Part shown: positions 5,829 through 25,213 of the stretch, piece after piece
How positions within the stretch are numbered: position 1 is the stretch's first letter
Layout: each line of letters begins with the position of its first letter
Assembly: GCA_038496445.1 (NCBI GenBank)
Contig: JALMLS010000320.1
Coordinates: 124,001 to 188,000, forward strand
DNA from: Trichosphaerium sp. ATCC 40318
Taxonomy: Eukaryota > Protista > Tubulinea
Direction: 5' to 3'
DNA: 64,000 nt
Made by a program: the position numbers and the translations under genes
The notes under the pieces: generated by a model
The model's input: only the letters and a program-made list of their open reading frames with translations
Databases searched by the model: none
What the model was told of the DNA's origin: nothing

Positions 5829-8065
5829 TCAGTCTTTAGTACTAAGAAAATTTATTGCATTTCTGTTTGTTACTTTCTTTTCATACTCATATCGGTGTGG
5901 TGAATGATGCATTACAAATGAGTAGATGTAACTGAACTTCTTGTTGATTGTGAATCTTGAGAAAGTAGCTATGGTACGCGTTCCTTTGTACTATTGTCAA
6001 CAAACGCAAAGGAAAGCGTATAGGAAGGAGTGGTTCTGTTAACCAGCCTCAATCCGATGGAGTGCGTTGCTTTTATCATAACAATGAACCATTATCTCCG
6101 TGTGCCTTTCAAGTTCACTGATGATACTCTTTTCGTTGAAGAGACTTCTAGTCTTCCAATTGTTTTTTTGACCTTTGTATAGCTTCATAAACAAGAAATG
6201 TTGCAACTGAGCGAGCGTGTCTTTGTCTTCACTATATTGACGATGGCGACATGCAAGCCATGCCTACAGATCCCTGTGGTGTACTATCATGTTCAAGCGA
6301 GTATTTCTGATTATCAATTAAATCTTTGAGGGAAGAAATACTTCCCGACCACCAATACGGTATAGATATTAGTTGTATACCTAAAAGATAGTTAGATATT
6401 TTTAACAACTTCTCACAAAGGTGTGGACTTACCAGCATCTTGGCATATTGTTTTCTTCTCAATATCACTTGCTTTCCATGATAAAGTAGGAGGAGAGAAA
6501 GGTAAGACATCATTATAATGTTGCTCTCCTATTGGAAAGATTTGAGAAAAAAGACAAAAAACGAAGAAAGCGGTTACAACTCTAGACCTAAGATGTCACA
6601 TCTTGACATTCTAATATCTGATAGTGATGATTTTTAGGGCCTCCTCAGTGTGTAACACATGGAAAAAGAAAAAATACAACGAAAACTGTGGCGTGAATGT
6701 CATTCCTGCTCTTTCTAGTACCTTGATATTCGAACGCAATATTCAGTGAAGATATAAATACGTCAAGTCGTATCTCTCCTCCAGTAGTATCTCTGTATCC
6801 TATGACATGTTCTTCTTTCATCTGTGTGCCCGGAAAGACCTCTAAAAGACACTGCAGAAGCCGTCTGTTAAGTAAATTCTATTAGCATAAAAATGCCAGG
6901 TTGATTTGAAACAACAAAGCGTACTGTTGTTTTGCCTTTTTCAAGTAAAATGAAAAATGCGGCCAATGCCATAGTATATTAGGGTACATCTTTGAGAGAA
7001 CATATGGAAAATAACGAAGCAAACTCTTGCCTCCAAGACTGATTATTTGACATTGTGAAATACGATACCTAGAAAGTTTATTAAAAAAGACAAGAAGATC
7101 ATGTCACGTGATGTAAGATTAATATCGACATACAATATTATTCAATTAATGAATTACTATTATATCTACAAAAATATACCCGTACCATTCTTCTGGTTTA
7201 GTCAGGTTAAGTAGGTTCTGTGCATTCACAAAAAAATCCATAACGTTTTTTTTATCTTTCCAAAATCCAGAACGCTTTTGTGTTGTATATCTAACGACTC
7301 TGTTAACAAAAAGTATCTATTTTACTTCATTACTCACTTGTATAACCTGTCAACATCCCAAGCATATTTTGGGTAAACGGATTGTAAAGCCTTTGATAAA
7401 GAGTTGTTGTACCTGTCACGTACATTAGGGTTTTTTTCCTTGTTTTTTCTTAAAAGTTTGACACTTTCTCATTGCACATAAAACGTACTTGCTACTTATC
7501 ATACCACCACCACCACATCTGTGTATTGTATCAATGTTTACATTGTACCAATCATCCATTATTGTGATAGATAGACGAGCACCAATCTAAGAACGTCTTT
7601 TTTTAGCTCCTTGACTTAAAGTACGTTTTACCTCCTCCAATAATTGTTTTTGGTTGTTTGCATCGTCCCAGTACCCTTTAGATGTACGCCTACGCGCGTG
7701 GGTGAGTATTGCATTGAGTTTTGTATGAGCCGTTTAGCGTATTACCAAAAACTTGATTCATTCCATTTATGGTTGTAGTATATAGCTTTTAACGCATTGT
7801 ATAGTGACCAGTTATAGCTAGAGCGCTGTTAGGACACTTTTACCAAAAAACAACTCAACTGTGTTGAAATAACAGATAAAGCACCAAGGTTGCTGCACAT
7901 CCTTCTAGTGACGTTGTACCAACCATCTAAATCTTTAATACCGAGTTCTTTGCCAATAGCATCAAATGTCACCCTTTGGTTATGCGGGTTGTCCCAATAC
8001 CCTTTTGGTCTGCCTCTTGGCTTTATTTTTAAGCGTGGCCGTTTTAAAACGCGGTACATCCTCAT
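5829..8065 (-). CDS. Multi-exon protein with GYWD...DWY helical repeats and a C-terminal PD-(D/E)XK (RAP/DUF559-like) nuclease-type domain
   Basis: Repeats KGYWDNPHNQRVTFDAIGKELGIKDLDGWYNVT and KGYWDDANNQKQLLE...IMDDWYNV. Spliced C-terminal part reads EIRLDVFISSLNIAFEYQG|EQHY...DIEKKTICQDA|GIQLISIPYWW. Both ends are uncertain. Confidence 0.7.
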
Positions 8066-19649: not shown

Positions 19650-22153
19650 TTACAGGATTGCGATCTCACCAGCAGGTTTAATCCAGCGAATTTGATTGGT
19701 CCTAGTACCACCCAAAAAGTTATGTGGGAAAGGAAGCTTGTAGTCTACAATCTTATCCAAACGATCCATGTGATCTAGCGAAAAGAGAAGAATTTAAGAG
19801 CGTGTTTTAATCAAAACAAAAAAAAAGAAAAAAGCAAGAACTAGAGCTACCTTGAGTGAGTCTGAATTTACTCTCCAAAGCACCGATATTATCTTCTAAA
19901 TGCCGAACTTTCGATACGCCAACAATAGCAGAAGTGGTACCACGTTGCTGGAGTATCCAGTTCAAAGACACTTGTGATGGGGTACATCGAAGTTCTTTTG
20001 AAATTTTGACGAGTTCATCAGCAATATCATAGTCTTTTTCAGTCATCTCAACTATTCTCTGACCTTCACCTGCCTGTTGCAATACTGTTAATATACAAAA
20101 CACAAGCAATAATACTCGTACTTCTTGCCCACGTAAAAATCTTCCGGTATACTTTCCAGCACCTAAAACACTCCATGGTACGCTACCTAGGCCCATTTGA
20201 TTGGCCATTGGCAGAATATCTGACTGTAAATCTCTGTCGCCTACATTATGGCGTCCTTGGTAGGCTATAAACTTACTAATTGAAGTCAAAATCGTAGCTT
20301 AAAAGGTCAAAGATTCATCCAGCGTGAACAACTTAAAACAGCTATACTTATGTCCATCCTCTTACTTGAGCAATAGATTGAGCAGAAGAAACTACCCATG
20401 CTGGTGTATCTGATATACCAATGTATCGAACTTTACCTGAACGAACCTAAAACATGTTAAAAAACACAACATCAACACGTGTTTTTCGTTCAATAATGAA
20501 CTACTACATACCAAGTCGTCCAATCCGCGCATTACTTCTTCAATTGGTGTAGTATAGTCCCACATATGTAGATATAAAAGATCCTAATGTCATAAGTATC
20601 ACGTGCAATCTAAAAACACTACAAAAACATACAATATACGTTGTTCTTAGTCTCTTCAATGACAAGTCTATGGAGTACATCATATTCGTTCTTGAATTTC
20701 CGCCATGGTTTATATTCATCGATTCACCAATCTTAGGGCCTGAAAACTTTGTGGCAATTACGAGCTAGCAAACAAAAAAGTGAGTTTTTCTATCAAGAGC
20801 CAAAAAACAGAGTCCGTACAGGGCTGAAACTAAATAAGGCTTTTTTTGCAAAAGCCATTTTTTTGCCACCAAATACAGCCTTATTTTTCACCAAATTGCC
20901 TTGTTTTTGCCAAAAAAAATGGGCAAATATGAGGCATTGCCTTGTAATTTTGGGCTTTGAAGCCTCATATTTGGGCCAAATAGCAAGCAACTGGTTCACT
21001 AATTAGCCTTAAAATAGCCTGCATTGTTGGTCCAATAATGCCTCATTTTTTGTGCAACAATAAGGCATTTTTGCCCTCAATTTTTGGGCATAACCCAGGC
21101 ACCATATACTCATAAAACAAGGCTTTATATAGGCATACAATAGTGATTCATTTATTAAAGTACAGTACACAAAACACAAAAAACTTCAATGTCCTTCATG
21201 TGAAAAAAAACCTTTAGTTAAAAAAAAAAATTAACAAATTATTGGTATAATTTTCGCGGACTGGAAAAATGGTTTAAAGTACCTATAATCCTGTTGTAGC
21301 TGGATTTGGGTGCTGCGGTTCGAATGGCGGTGGTTTCGTTAGAATCCATAAAATACTAAGCGCGTGGTAACGACGTCTATATAAAACGTCAGTAGTAAAT
21401 GAAAAAAAAATGTTTAGGAAGTGTTGGTGTGGTGGAGACTTACCTTAAACCAATGTATCCTTAATGTACAATGTGTACACAACCAATGCCTAATTGATGC
21501 CTATAAATTTAAGGTTGGCAATGCATAAAAAAACTAGGGCAGGCATTGCCTAAAAAAAACAAGGCATTGCAACAATTAAGGCATTGCCCAACAAAGCCTT
21601 ATTTCAATGCCTGATTTTTGCCTTTTCTGCCATTGCCTTTGCAAAATCAGGCATTGCCATTTTTGCATGCCTGATTTTTGCCATCAATGCCTGATTTTAA
21701 AAAAATGCCTTCATATTTAAGGCAAAGCCTTGTTTAGTTTCAGCCCTGTATTTTTACCTCATCGTGGTTACCAGCTTCTTCCATAAACTCGCCCAGCCAC
21801 TCCTCAGACTGTCCGTTTTGGTAGTTGACTGCAGTATCAAAGAAGTTGCCTCCCTTGGAAATAAAGTGGTTGAAAACCTTATGTGCTTCTTCCTTATCCA
21901 TGTGGATTCCTATAAAAAATGACATTATTTTCAAGGGTATTGAGGCATTTCGTCTCTATCTGAGAGTTGATATTTCACATACCCAACGGCTTCCAAGTTT
22001 GTCCCCATGTCATGGTACCCAAGCACAGAGGTGATACACGAAGGCCTGCCAGTAAGTCAGTATTGTAAGACTTTTTTTAACCGCACCTGAATTGCCTAGT
22101 AGTTGGTACTCACTGAGTCCGCTTTTACGTTCTGGAGACTTGAGGTACGCCAT
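19650..22153 (-). CDS. Aldo-keto reductase (aryl-alcohol dehydrogenase-like), multi-exon
   Basis: LGNSG, LCLGTM, GGNFFDTAVNYQNGQSEEWLG, LVIATKFS, GGNSR, YLHMWDYTTPIEEVMRGLDDL, GKVRYIGISDTPAW and HLEDNIGAL. Confidence 0.92.
20819..21748. mobile_element. Non-autonomous TIR (MITE-like) element, family 1 copy A, inside an AKR intron
   Basis: TIRs CAGGGCTGAAACTAAA(T/C)AAGGCTTT, a TA duplication on both sides, and subterminal GGCATT/AATGCC arrays. About 98% identical to 24285-25213. Confidence 0.92.
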
Positions 22154-22766
22154 ATTTTTCTGATGTGGTGTTATGTGTTTTAGGTTTGTAAACAATAGCA
22201 GGCGTAGGTAAGGAGCAGTTAAGCTTGATTTCAGTGAATCATTGTTTCCACCAAAAAAAAACTGGGTTCCCTAAGAAAACAAACTACTAGAAACCACTAA
22301 CAATAAAGTGTTACCTTTTATAGATTTTTAGGGTTTAGTTACGAATTCCTTTGTCATGAATTCGCTCCGAGGAAATGTGAACCAGCAGCGTTGACAAGTG
22401 GGTTTTAGCTCAGAGAAGTAGGATAAAGTGAAAATGGTGACAAGTGATGTTTGTAAGTGCATTTAGCGTAACTGGAAAGCATCAGTCTAAATAAACATAG
22501 CTGTCATGTATATGAATTTGTTGAGAAAAGATTAAAACAATGTTAATTCATAGGGGAGTGTAGAAGCTTAAACGTGTACGCTATACTGCAAACTTGATAA
22601 AATATCAAAGTGAATCAAGACAACATTTGCTCCAAATAGATTGCTCAAGCATTCAATTTCTATATAGCTAAGTGAGCGACGCTCTTAAAGCCCTATCAAC
22701 CTAACAAGACTGTTTAACCGAGGGCCCGTCACCTCTAACATACATATTGGGTACTGATCACTGTCA

Positions 22767-23821
22767 CAGGTCTAAAAAAATATACCAGTTTTTTTGGTAT
22801 ATACCACTTTTATACCACTTTTTTATACCAGTTTTTTATGGTATATACCAAAAAAAGTGGTATATTTTGACTGAAATATACCAAAAAAAGTGGTATATTG
22901 GCCAAATATACCAACAATATACCAAAAAACAGGTATAAAAGCAGAAAATATACCACTTTTTTTCACCAGAAAAAAAATATACCACTTTTTTATACCACTT
23001 TTTTTAGGTATATACCAGGTATATACCACTTTTTTATACCAGTTTTTCATGGTATATACCACTTTTATATACCACTTTATGCCTACTTATGGTACACCTG
23101 CAATTCCAGAAAATACACTTTATTTAATACACAGTTTGTGAGCTACAAGTTTTGGACAATGTCCACTACAGTTACATTACTATGGGCATCTGGAAAATTC
23201 GTCCATCTCTATGAGCTTGCTGTACCTACTGTAAAAACATGCTGCGCACCTAATGAAAGTGGTCCCACCTGAATCCATCAATTACTAAGGCCTACGGAGG
23301 TCGGTTAATGTATATCAAACGAAAATAAAATAAAACTTTGTCTGGTACCCACGAACGTCTGTATAATACCTGCAATGTATGTTCCTTAATGTTGGTACTG
23401 GAATCAGGTCCTGTGGTTCGAATGAGCTTGGTTTGGTTAGATTCTATGATATACTAAGGTCCCTACGCACCGTTCAATGTATGACGTCTATGATCGTTCA
23501 ACAAGAAAACCCATTACCAAAAAGCTCCTTAATGACCTTCTTGAAGCATACCATAAAAGTGGTATATACCAATAAAAAGGTGGTATATACCACATACCAT
23601 AAAAAAGTGGTATATACCACTTTATATACCATTTTTAGAAGGTCTCATTATGTGAATGAAAAGTGGTATATACCACTTCCATATACCACTTTTTTATTCA
23701 CTTAATTTCTAAAAAAAGTGGTATTTCAAAATGGTATATACCAGTTCATATACCATTTTGTTGAAAAAAGTGGTATATACCATAAAAAAACTGGTATATA
23801 CCACTTTAATTTTTAGACCTG
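22767..23821. mobile_element. Non-autonomous TIR element, family 2
   Basis: Termini CAGGTCTAAAAA...TTTTTAGACCTG with dense subterminal TATACCAC/GTGGTATA arrays at both ends. The target-site duplication is unclear (flanks tcactgtca and ttactgaca, 7/9 match). Confidence 0.85.
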
Positions 23822-24255
23822 TTACTGACAATATTATCAAACAATTTGCTGGCGTCCATACTATTGACCTCACTTGCACTTCTGTAACTGATGAAGGCAT
23901 TAAAGCACTTGCTGGAGTTCATACTATTAACCTTAGTAACATTTTAGTAACTGATGAAGGTGCTAAAGCACTTGCTGGAGTCCATACTATTGATCTTAGT
24001 TACACTTTAGTAACTGATGAAGGCATTAAATCACTTGCTGGCGTGCATACTATTGACCTTACTGACACTGAAGTAACTGATGAAGGCATTAAAGCACTTG
24101 CTGGAGTTCATACTATTAACCTTAATAGCACTGAGGTATCTGATGAAGGCATTAAAGCACTTGCTGGCGTGCACACTATTTACCTTAGTTATGACAGTCT
24201 AGTAACCAATGAAGGTGTCAAAGCACTTGTTGTGGCAAAAATATTCGGTAGATAG
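23821..24255 (+). pseudogene. Headless LRR cassette (about 6 repeats, no F-box) between two TIR elements
   Basis: VTDNIIKQFAGVHTIDLTCTSVTDEGIKALAG... begins exactly at the right TIR of the family-2 element. It is intact to a stop codon and uses 63-nt near-identical repeats. Confidence 0.75.
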
Positions 24256-24284
24256 GATGGAACTATAATGTGTTCAATTTCATG

Positions 24285-25213
24285 CAGGGCTGAAACTAAA
24301 TAAGGCTTTTTTTGCAAAAGCCATTTTTTTGCCACCAAATACAGCCTTATTTTTCACCAAATTGCCTTGTTTTTGCCAAAAAAAATGGGCAAATATGAGG
24401 CATTGCCTTGTAATTTTGGGCTTTGGAGCCTCATATTTGGGCCAAATAGCAAGCAACTGGTTCACTAATTAGCCTTAAAATAGCCTGCATTGTTGGTCCA
24501 ATAATGCCTCATTTTTTGTGCAACAATAAGGCATTTTTGCCCTCAATTTTTGGGCATAACCCAGGCACCATATACTCATAAAACAAGGATTTATATAGGC
24601 ATACAATAATGATTCATTTATTAAAGTACAGTACACAAAACACAAAAAACTTCAATGTCCTCCATGTGAAAAAAAACCTTTAGTTAAAAAAAAAAATTAA
24701 CAAATTATTGGTATAATTTTCGCGGACTGGAAAAATGGTTTAAAGTATCTATACTCCTGTTGTAGGTGGATTTGGGTGCTGCGGTTCGAATGACGGCGGT
24801 TTCGTTAGAATCCATAAAATACTAAGAGCGTGGTGACAACGTCTATATAAAACGTCAGTAGTAAATGAAAAAAAATGTTTAGGAAGTGTTGGTGTGGTGG
24901 AAACTTACCTTAAACCAATGTATCCTTAATGTACAATGTGTACACAACCAATGCCTAATTGGTGCCTGTAAATTTAAGGCTGGCAATGCATAAAAAAACT
25001 AGGGCAGGCATTGCCTAAAAAAAACAAGGCATTGCAACAATTAAGGCATTGCCCAACAAAGCCTTATTTCAATGCCTGATTTTTGCCTTTTCTGCCATTG
25101 CCTTTGCAAAATCAGGCATTGCCATTTTTGCATGCCTGATTTTTGCCATCAATGCCTGATTTTAAAAAAATGCCTTCATATTTAAGGCAAAGCCTTGTTT
25201 AGTTTCAGCCCTG
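24285..25213. mobile_element. Non-autonomous TIR element, family 1 copy B
   Basis: Same TIRs and body as 20819-21748, flanked by TG on both sides. Confidence 0.92.

Follow-up and report, generated by a model that had tools for sequence, protein, structure and literature searches.

In the maize transposon Spm, the subterminal repeats are followed by a GC- and CpG-rich transcribed leader that forms the downstream control region. An internal region that is conserved between otherwise different elements has been described in the CMITE families of Acropora corals, where it is common to families of transposable elements of the miniature inverted-repeat type (MITEs) with different ends and where both its origin and its function are unknown (Wang, Zhang, Meyer and Matz 2010; PMC2872659). 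Here we analyse a 64,000-nucleotide stretch (the window) of the amoeba Trichosphaerium sp. ATCC 40318, comprising positions 124,001 to 188,000 of contig JALMLS010000320.1 within a eukaryotic assembly of 70 Mb and 37% G+C (GCA_038496445.1). The window contains non-autonomous elements with terminal inverted repeats (TIRs) in which, as in the CMITEs, an internal region is better kept across families than the termini are. At the heart of this region is a module of about 110–135 nt that can be aligned without gaps in at least six non-autonomous families, designated F1 to F6, and eight module types. The explanation that we favour, in which our confidence is about evenly balanced, is that the module heads a small minus-strand unit of the RNA polymerase II (Pol II) type, spliced and polyadenylated, and forms its conserved 5' leader, which does not code for protein; a CACTA/Mirage-like lineage would have passed this leader down under constraint on both its letters and its length.

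A gapless module in elements with unrelated arms

The window carries two copies of F1 and one of F2, the arms of which are built from different short motifs:

20820-21749, plus strand: F1 copy A, a non-autonomous TIR element of 930 bp with CAGGGCTGAAAC termini, GGCATT-type subterminal arms and a TA target duplication
24285-25213, plus strand: F1 copy B, 929 bp, with a TG target duplication
22768-23822, plus strand: F2 non-autonomous element, 1055 bp, with CAGGTCTAAAAA termini and TGGTATATACCA-type arms

An earlier note on this DNA had reported that the two families share a 68-nt core, and this is confirmed: positions 21293-21360 and 23391-23458 are identical at 51 of 68 nt without a gap, which is the top gapless 68-nt match between the F1 and F2 elements, compared with a mean of 36.4 (standard deviation 1.3) and a maximum of 41 in 200 shuffles. 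Copy B (24759-24826) matches the F2 core at 50 of 68 nt. The gapless similarity extends beyond the 68-nt core, its best-kept part, to approximately 135 nt, and F2 contains a second, weaker core (23221-23289) at a distance of 169 nt from the first. In F1 copy A as well as in F2, the core is followed by GACGTCTAT, as the same note described. The modules of the window, in minus-strand orientation, are as follows:

21256-21390, minus strand: the module as shared by F1 copy A, aligned over 135 nt without gaps; core 21292-21360
21354-21360, minus strand: invariant heptamer CTTAGTA of F1 copy A
24722-24856, minus strand: the same shared module in F1 copy B, with its core at 24758-24826
23354-23488, minus strand: module b of F2, upstream of module a when read on the minus strand, core 23390-23458, with ATA at the position of the F1 ATG
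23185-23319, minus strand: module a of F2 (core 23221-23289), a tandem duplicate of module b at a distance of exactly 169 nt, diverged in sequence

A core profile run over 356 kb of sequence surrounding copies of F1 and F2 brought out families F3 to F6. Nine module sequences align across 135 columns with zero gaps, and identity among the module types is 52–88% in the 69-nt core versus 21–36% between non-sister families in the flank from -130 to -45. Parsimony gives the same picture, with 5–8 steps per 10 columns in three blocks within the module and 30–37 outside it, and all module types keep one unchanged heptamer, TACTAAG, which reads CTTAGTA on the minus strand and stands there at the start of the module. 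The core is thus slower-evolving than its surroundings and free of insertions and deletions, which bears out the proposal of the note that a functionally constrained element is kept by non-autonomous elements with unrelated arms. As a separate matter, CTTAGTA was considered as a host initiator motif and rejected, as it is not enriched in the window (9 occurrences versus 10.8 expected, with four of the nine belonging to modules).

The module types fall into three groups, namely the single modules of F1, F3, F4 and F5, the b-types (F2b and F6b), near relatives of the single modules, and the a-types (F2a and F6a). F6 likewise has two cores, which are 168–169 nt apart in its four copies, and the grouping into a-types and b-types therefore places the 169-nt duplication before the split of F2 and F6. 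The internal regions of these two families stay in register over approximately 379 nt at ~55–64% identity, whereas the F2 arms align to those of F1 or F6 only at the level of shuffled sequence. Between families, the internal region is better conserved than the ends.

These data speak to a neutral explanation, in which the module would be a relic of the start of an ancestral transposon gene and would appear conserved either through the youth of the families as offshoots or through exchange of the internal segment between them by recombination or gap repair. An internal layout common to the families (module, TGGACATTG block, TGTA/AATAAA) fits a single ancestral short element, the frequent nesting of elements (L012, L063) would provide chances for template switching, and variation of the module within families is not reduced. 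However, a core divergence of 12–48% with zero insertions or deletions over eight lineages is hard to obtain neutrally when the adjoining sequence has lost any similarity, and the relationships between modules are tree-like, with no mosaic pattern. We therefore regard a neutral relic as improbable.

The module carriers are short, non-autonomous transposons

The carriers are non-autonomous TIR DNA transposons of the MITE type, as judged from their TIRs, their target duplication and their short form, with many copies in F1, F2 and F3. All six families have CAGG(G/T)... termini, and the related ends CAGGGCTGAAA and CAGGTCTAAAA are as the earlier note described them. The TIRs of F1 consist of 25–28-nt arms with 93–96% complementarity and those of F2 are CAGGTCTAAAAA/TTTTTAGACCTG, with subterminal arrays across the families that are dense in GGCATT, TATACCA and TTTGCCA. 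Element lengths range from 720 to 1060 bp. We found at least 119 candidate copies of F1, 64 of F2 and 110 of F3 (each count a lower bound), with identities of 93–100%, so that the copies of these three families are both many and young. F3 has GGCATT-type arms; F4 and F5, of ~720 bp, are represented by roughly 12 old copies with 75–85% identity, and F6 (823 bp, with TTTGCCA/GGCAAA-type arms) by four copies. None of the short open reading frames listed for the elements resembles a transposase gene, and the internal regions of F2 and F6 are closed in all six frames.

The target duplication is 2 bp long and can have any sequence, with identical flanks in 28 of 30 F2 copies and 16 of 26 F1 copies, where chance would give 1/16. 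The F2 copy of the window is flanked by CA and TT and hence has no intact 2-bp duplication, and its 8-base flanks match at six of eight positions. Ten of the 26 F1 copies (F1 copies in L009, L012, L015 and L017) lack identical 2-bp flanks, and several of these show 3–4-bp matches offset by one or two bases (TAGC, CATG, GCA); the cleavage offset of F1 may be less fixed than that of F2.

Several other features of the carriers were observed along the way. The arm motifs of F1, F2 and F6 follow one design, that of near-palindromic 9–12-mers of the form GG(C/T)A-W(n)-(G/A)CC (window positions 20820-21100 and 22768-23080; L083:2105-2330), with GGCATTGCC, GGTATATACC and GGCATTTGCC as examples, and this fits a recognition motif that would drift together with its binding protein. 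Elements can be nested, as shown by an F2 copy within the right arm of an F1 copy (L012:1071-3046) and another within the right arm of an F3 copy (L063). Module-bearing elements cluster on small contigs, and a tandem array of GTACAGGT-rich units with a period of ~35 bp lies between two inverted F4/F5 copies (L093:3296-4033 and 6549-6665).

Searches for further carriers or for an autonomous parent returned short elements only. Within the 356 kb, nhmmer found F1 to F6 and no other family. A whole-genome pattern of 35 places, built to exclude the four abundant module types, detected only variants of F4, F5, F6 and F2a and one chance match; by design this pattern omits F1-, F3-, F2a- and F2b-type letters and cannot detect parents of those families. 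Whole-element queries with F5 and F6 recovered the F4/F5 and F6 copies of the genome, all of them short, with no long copy. A skeleton of 21 invariant bases matches the four modules of the window and gave zero matches in metagenome and viral contigs.

The module does not behave as a folded RNA or a Pol III promoter

The earlier note had interpreted the core as an imperfect hairpin with compensatory changes, favouring a plus-strand RNA, and had likened an invariant central GGTTCGAATG to a B-box of RNA polymerase III (Pol III) promoters or to a T-loop. The changes it described are present in the sequence: the stem is perfect in F1 (TGGATT/AATCCA) and is maintained via double changes in F3 (TGAAAT/ATTTCA) and F2b (TGGAAT/ATTCTA). 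In the five other module types (F4, F5, F6b, F2a and F6a) the stem is broken, and within F1 one stem position is polymorphic (G/C/T). For the nine module sequences, RNAalifold predicts zero consensus pairs on either strand. The hairpin named in the note is paired in 65.7% of cells, near the 61.3% in shuffled sequences, the values for its helices 1 and 2 being 74.6% and 50%, and a slide control in which the partners are shifted by -1 has a covariation score of 0.174 versus 0.187 for the unshifted stem.

The central GGTTCGAATG is not invariant, being kept only in F1, F4 and F2b (three of eight types) and altered in F3, F5, F6b, F2a and F6a. An A-box is absent from the module, ARAGORN reports zero transfer RNAs, and even at E values up to 10 the cores are without a match in Rfam. 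A plus-strand structured small RNA, or an internal promoter of the Pol III type, carried as cargo is thus the least probable of the explanations that we consider: the perfect F1 stem, the double changes that preserve it in F3 and F2b and the B-box resemblance in three types would all be expected, but neither the pairing statistics nor the loss of the motif in five types agree with it. In addition, the splice-like and polyadenylation signals described below are on the minus strand and not on the plus strand.

Two further candidates were tried. By eye, the boxes and T-run terminators of a C/D-box small nucleolar RNA or a U6-type Pol III unit are not conserved. An introner was rejected as well, since splicing at the ends of F2 would leave 10 nt.

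The module shows no coding constraint

On the minus strand, an ATG is found 7 nt past the heptamer, opening frames of 36 codons in F1, 34 in F3 and 32–33 in F2a. In the window, these frames are:

21239-21349, minus strand: 36-codon open frame of F1 copy A, starting 7 nt after the heptamer
24705-24815, minus strand: 36-codon open frame of F1 copy B, the counterpart of 21239-21349
23180-23281, minus strand: 33-codon open frame of F2, the counterpart of the F1 frames

A coding first exon, or a micropeptide of 32–36 residues (MDSNETTAIRTAAP...), would account for the occurrence of frames at the same place in F1, F3 and F2a and for a few codon differences that look synonymous (Arg CGA/AGG, Pro CCC/CCA/CCT). 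Yet the ATG is present in only three of eight module types and replaced by ATA, ATT, AAC or ACG in the other five, and F4 and F5 have in-frame stops. Parsimony steps at codon positions 1, 2 and 3 number 25, 35 and 30, with no excess at third positions, and mismatches between sister families lack a periodicity of three (p 0.14–0.87). Over the 379 nt shared by F2 and F6, each of the six frames contains 5–10 stops. The module frames have no match in Pfam, and a profile search of 1.84 billion proteins produced only eight matches, which we consider noise as they are repeat proteins that were matched in many stretches. We judge the 36-codon frame to be free of coding constraint. The codon-position and periodicity tests, together with the missing relatives, speak against a minus-strand coding first exon, and coding as an explanation is largely refuted and very improbable. 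The earlier note had also raised the prospect of the core being transposase coding sequence with codon-type conservation, for which no codon signature was found.

Minus-strand signals surround the module

The module is accompanied by minus-strand motifs of the kind found in messages. GTAAGT-type donors lie 50–95 nt upstream of the module; F1 and F3 have AAG/GTAAGT where F4 and F5 carry GTAGGT or GTAGAT variants. At 4–21 nt ahead of the heptamer are a branch-like motif and TAG; in F1 and F3 the layout is CTACTGAC, 12 nt and TAG, and the host intron beside F1 copy A has a matching layout (TACTGAC, 12 nt, AG). A CAG is kept at the fixed position +97 to +99. Ahead of the far arm, TGTA and AATAAA occur in F1, F5, F2 and F6, the last two having AATAAA at +165; in F3 they were seen by eye, beyond the range of the motif scan. 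The corresponding features in the window are:

21438-21444, minus strand: donor-like AAG/GTAAGT of F1 copy A, upstream of the module and common to F3, F4 and F5
24903-24909, minus strand: donor-like AAG/GTAAGT of F1 copy B, upstream of the module
21377-21395, minus strand: CTACTGAC, a T-rich stretch and TATAG in F1 copy A, just upstream of the module; a putative branch/acceptor-like or TATA-like signal
24843-24861, minus strand: putative CTACTGAC-type branch/acceptor-like or TATA-like signal of F1 copy B, just upstream of the module
21151-21156, minus strand: AATAAA preceded by TGTA in F1 copy A, next to the far arm
24617-24622, minus strand: AATAAA preceded by TGTA in F1 copy B, next to the far arm
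within 23119-23128, minus strand: AATAAA equivalent of F2, from the motif scan

The distribution of CpG also separates the internal region from the arms. The observed/expected ratio of CpG is 1.0–1.8 in the internal region, the window average being 0.82, while the arms of F1, F2 and F3 contain 0–1 CpG over 230–350 nt, compared with ~8–11 expected; arrays that bind transposase may avoid methylatable sites. In the window, the CpG-poor arms are:

20820-21100: CpG-poor arm, F1 copy A
21470-21749: CpG-poor arm, F1 copy A
22768-23080: CpG-poor arm, F2
23560-23822: CpG-poor arm, F2

Taken together, the motifs suggest the following scheme. A clade of CACTA/Mirage-like non-autonomous transposons with CAGG ends and 2-bp duplications would carry a minus-strand unit between its arms, the latter being short-motif arrays that probably bind transposase. 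The unit would have been inherited by descent, including the tandem 169-nt duplication that appears older than the F2/F6 split, and the arm motifs would have changed beyond recognition while the letters and the length of the module stayed constrained. The module itself would act at the level of a DNA or RNA signal, as a promoter-proximal or leader control region, and presumably neither via a folded RNA nor via a peptide. Transcription and splicing of the unit, and any regulatory role of the module, are predictions from conserved motifs.

Several points weigh against a leader. Transcription, strand and splice sites are all deduced from motifs, and a TATA box is a second possible reading of the TA-rich element ~25 nt before CTTAGTA. 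The constancy in length over ~380 nt is not explained by a leader alone, because ordinary leaders and introns tolerate insertions and deletions. Part of the stem shows matched double changes (F1, F3 and F2b). Finally, an autonomous element with the module was not found in the searches above, so that the module is no more than a candidate for the front end of a parent's gene.

Some of these points are better accommodated by the main rival of a leader, in which transposition would use the module as a cis-acting DNA site, that is, an internal binding site or 'enhancer' for transposase or for a host architectural protein, kept at fixed spacing for better mobilisation. Such a site would account for conservation in elements without coding capacity that is stronger than in the arms, and it explains the constant length of F2 and F6, including the spacing of the 169-nt repeats, better than a leader does. 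The imperfect inverted repeat TGGATT...AATCCA co-changes on its two sides in F1, F3 and F2b, as a dimeric DNA-binding partner would cause, every module-bearing element seen is short, and a like role was proposed for the conserved internal region of the coral CMITEs by their authors (PMC2872659). On the other hand, the inverted repeat is lost in five of eight module types, a DNA site gives no role to the conserved splice-like and polyadenylation signals, and no transposase is tied to the elements. We consider a cis-acting DNA site unlikely, and a leader of a minus-strand unit remains the explanation that we prefer.

Genes next to the elements in the window

F1 copy A is located inside an intron of a gene for an aldo-keto reductase (Pfam Aldo_ket_red, E 7e-11; 20719-21901, minus strand), 9 nt past a GAG/GTAAAA donor and in the direction of the gene; were the element absent, the intron would measure only ~90 nt. 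The F2 copy adjoins an open frame with LRR_6 repeats (23821-24255; E 6e-19) that does not have a start of its own, and insertion of F2, or a later rearrangement, may have beheaded this LRR gene.

Significance and comparison with known systems

What the module means depends on why it is conserved. If it is merely the inherited leader of the message of its lineage, the elements would represent transposon anatomy of an ordinary kind, in a marine amoeba that has been little studied. If the conservation of letters and length reflects a requirement in cis, they would provide a clean natural system for studying what non-autonomous elements need besides their ends and how such parasites switch between transposases. 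The placing of a CpG-rich core between arms free of CpG is also a hint of interplay with DNA methylation by the host. A bolder proposal, which we place on the unlikely side, is that the module is a selected 'propagation cassette': a long-lived lineage of short elements would keep a CpG-rich transcribed core of fixed length and swap its arm arrays to exploit different transposases, the core being required in cis if the elements are to be mobilised or to escape silencing, as a cut-and-paste counterpart of the CORE-SINEs.

With regard to known transposons, the elements resemble the CACTA/Mirage/Chapaev (CMC) group in their short target duplication (2–3 bp, or 2–4 bp across the superfamily) and in their long subterminal arrays of short motifs. 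They differ from it in having CAGG and not CACTA termini, and no CMC transposase is tied to them; the Pfam profile PF02992 has no match in this genome, and likewise none in any control genome. The CpG-rich island between CpG-free arms is comparable to the downstream control region of Spm, and the succession of subterminal repeats and a GC-rich leader would resemble the Spm layout. As in Ds, derived from Ac, and KP, derived from the P element, a short element retains both ends together with the start and the end of what would be a parent's message. In contrast to Ds and KP, however, no parent was found here and one internal layout extends across families with unrelated arms, which suggests that diversification took place within the short form and not by repeated derivation from separate parents.

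The CORE-SINE, V-SINE and Deu-SINE groups of short interspersed elements (SINEs) also have a conserved central domain of unknown function in otherwise different non-autonomous families; those are retrotransposed Pol III elements, whereas the present ones are cut-and-paste TIR elements with no conserved Pol III signals. The closest described counterparts are the coral CMITEs, which are linked to piggyBac-like transposons, while the elements of Trichosphaerium have CAGG ends and a 2-bp duplication of variable sequence. Compared with the CMITEs, what differs here is the superfamily, the strict gaplessness of the module, the constant 169-nt spacing of its duplicates in two families, and its position within a predicted mini transcription unit of splice-like and poly(A) signals.

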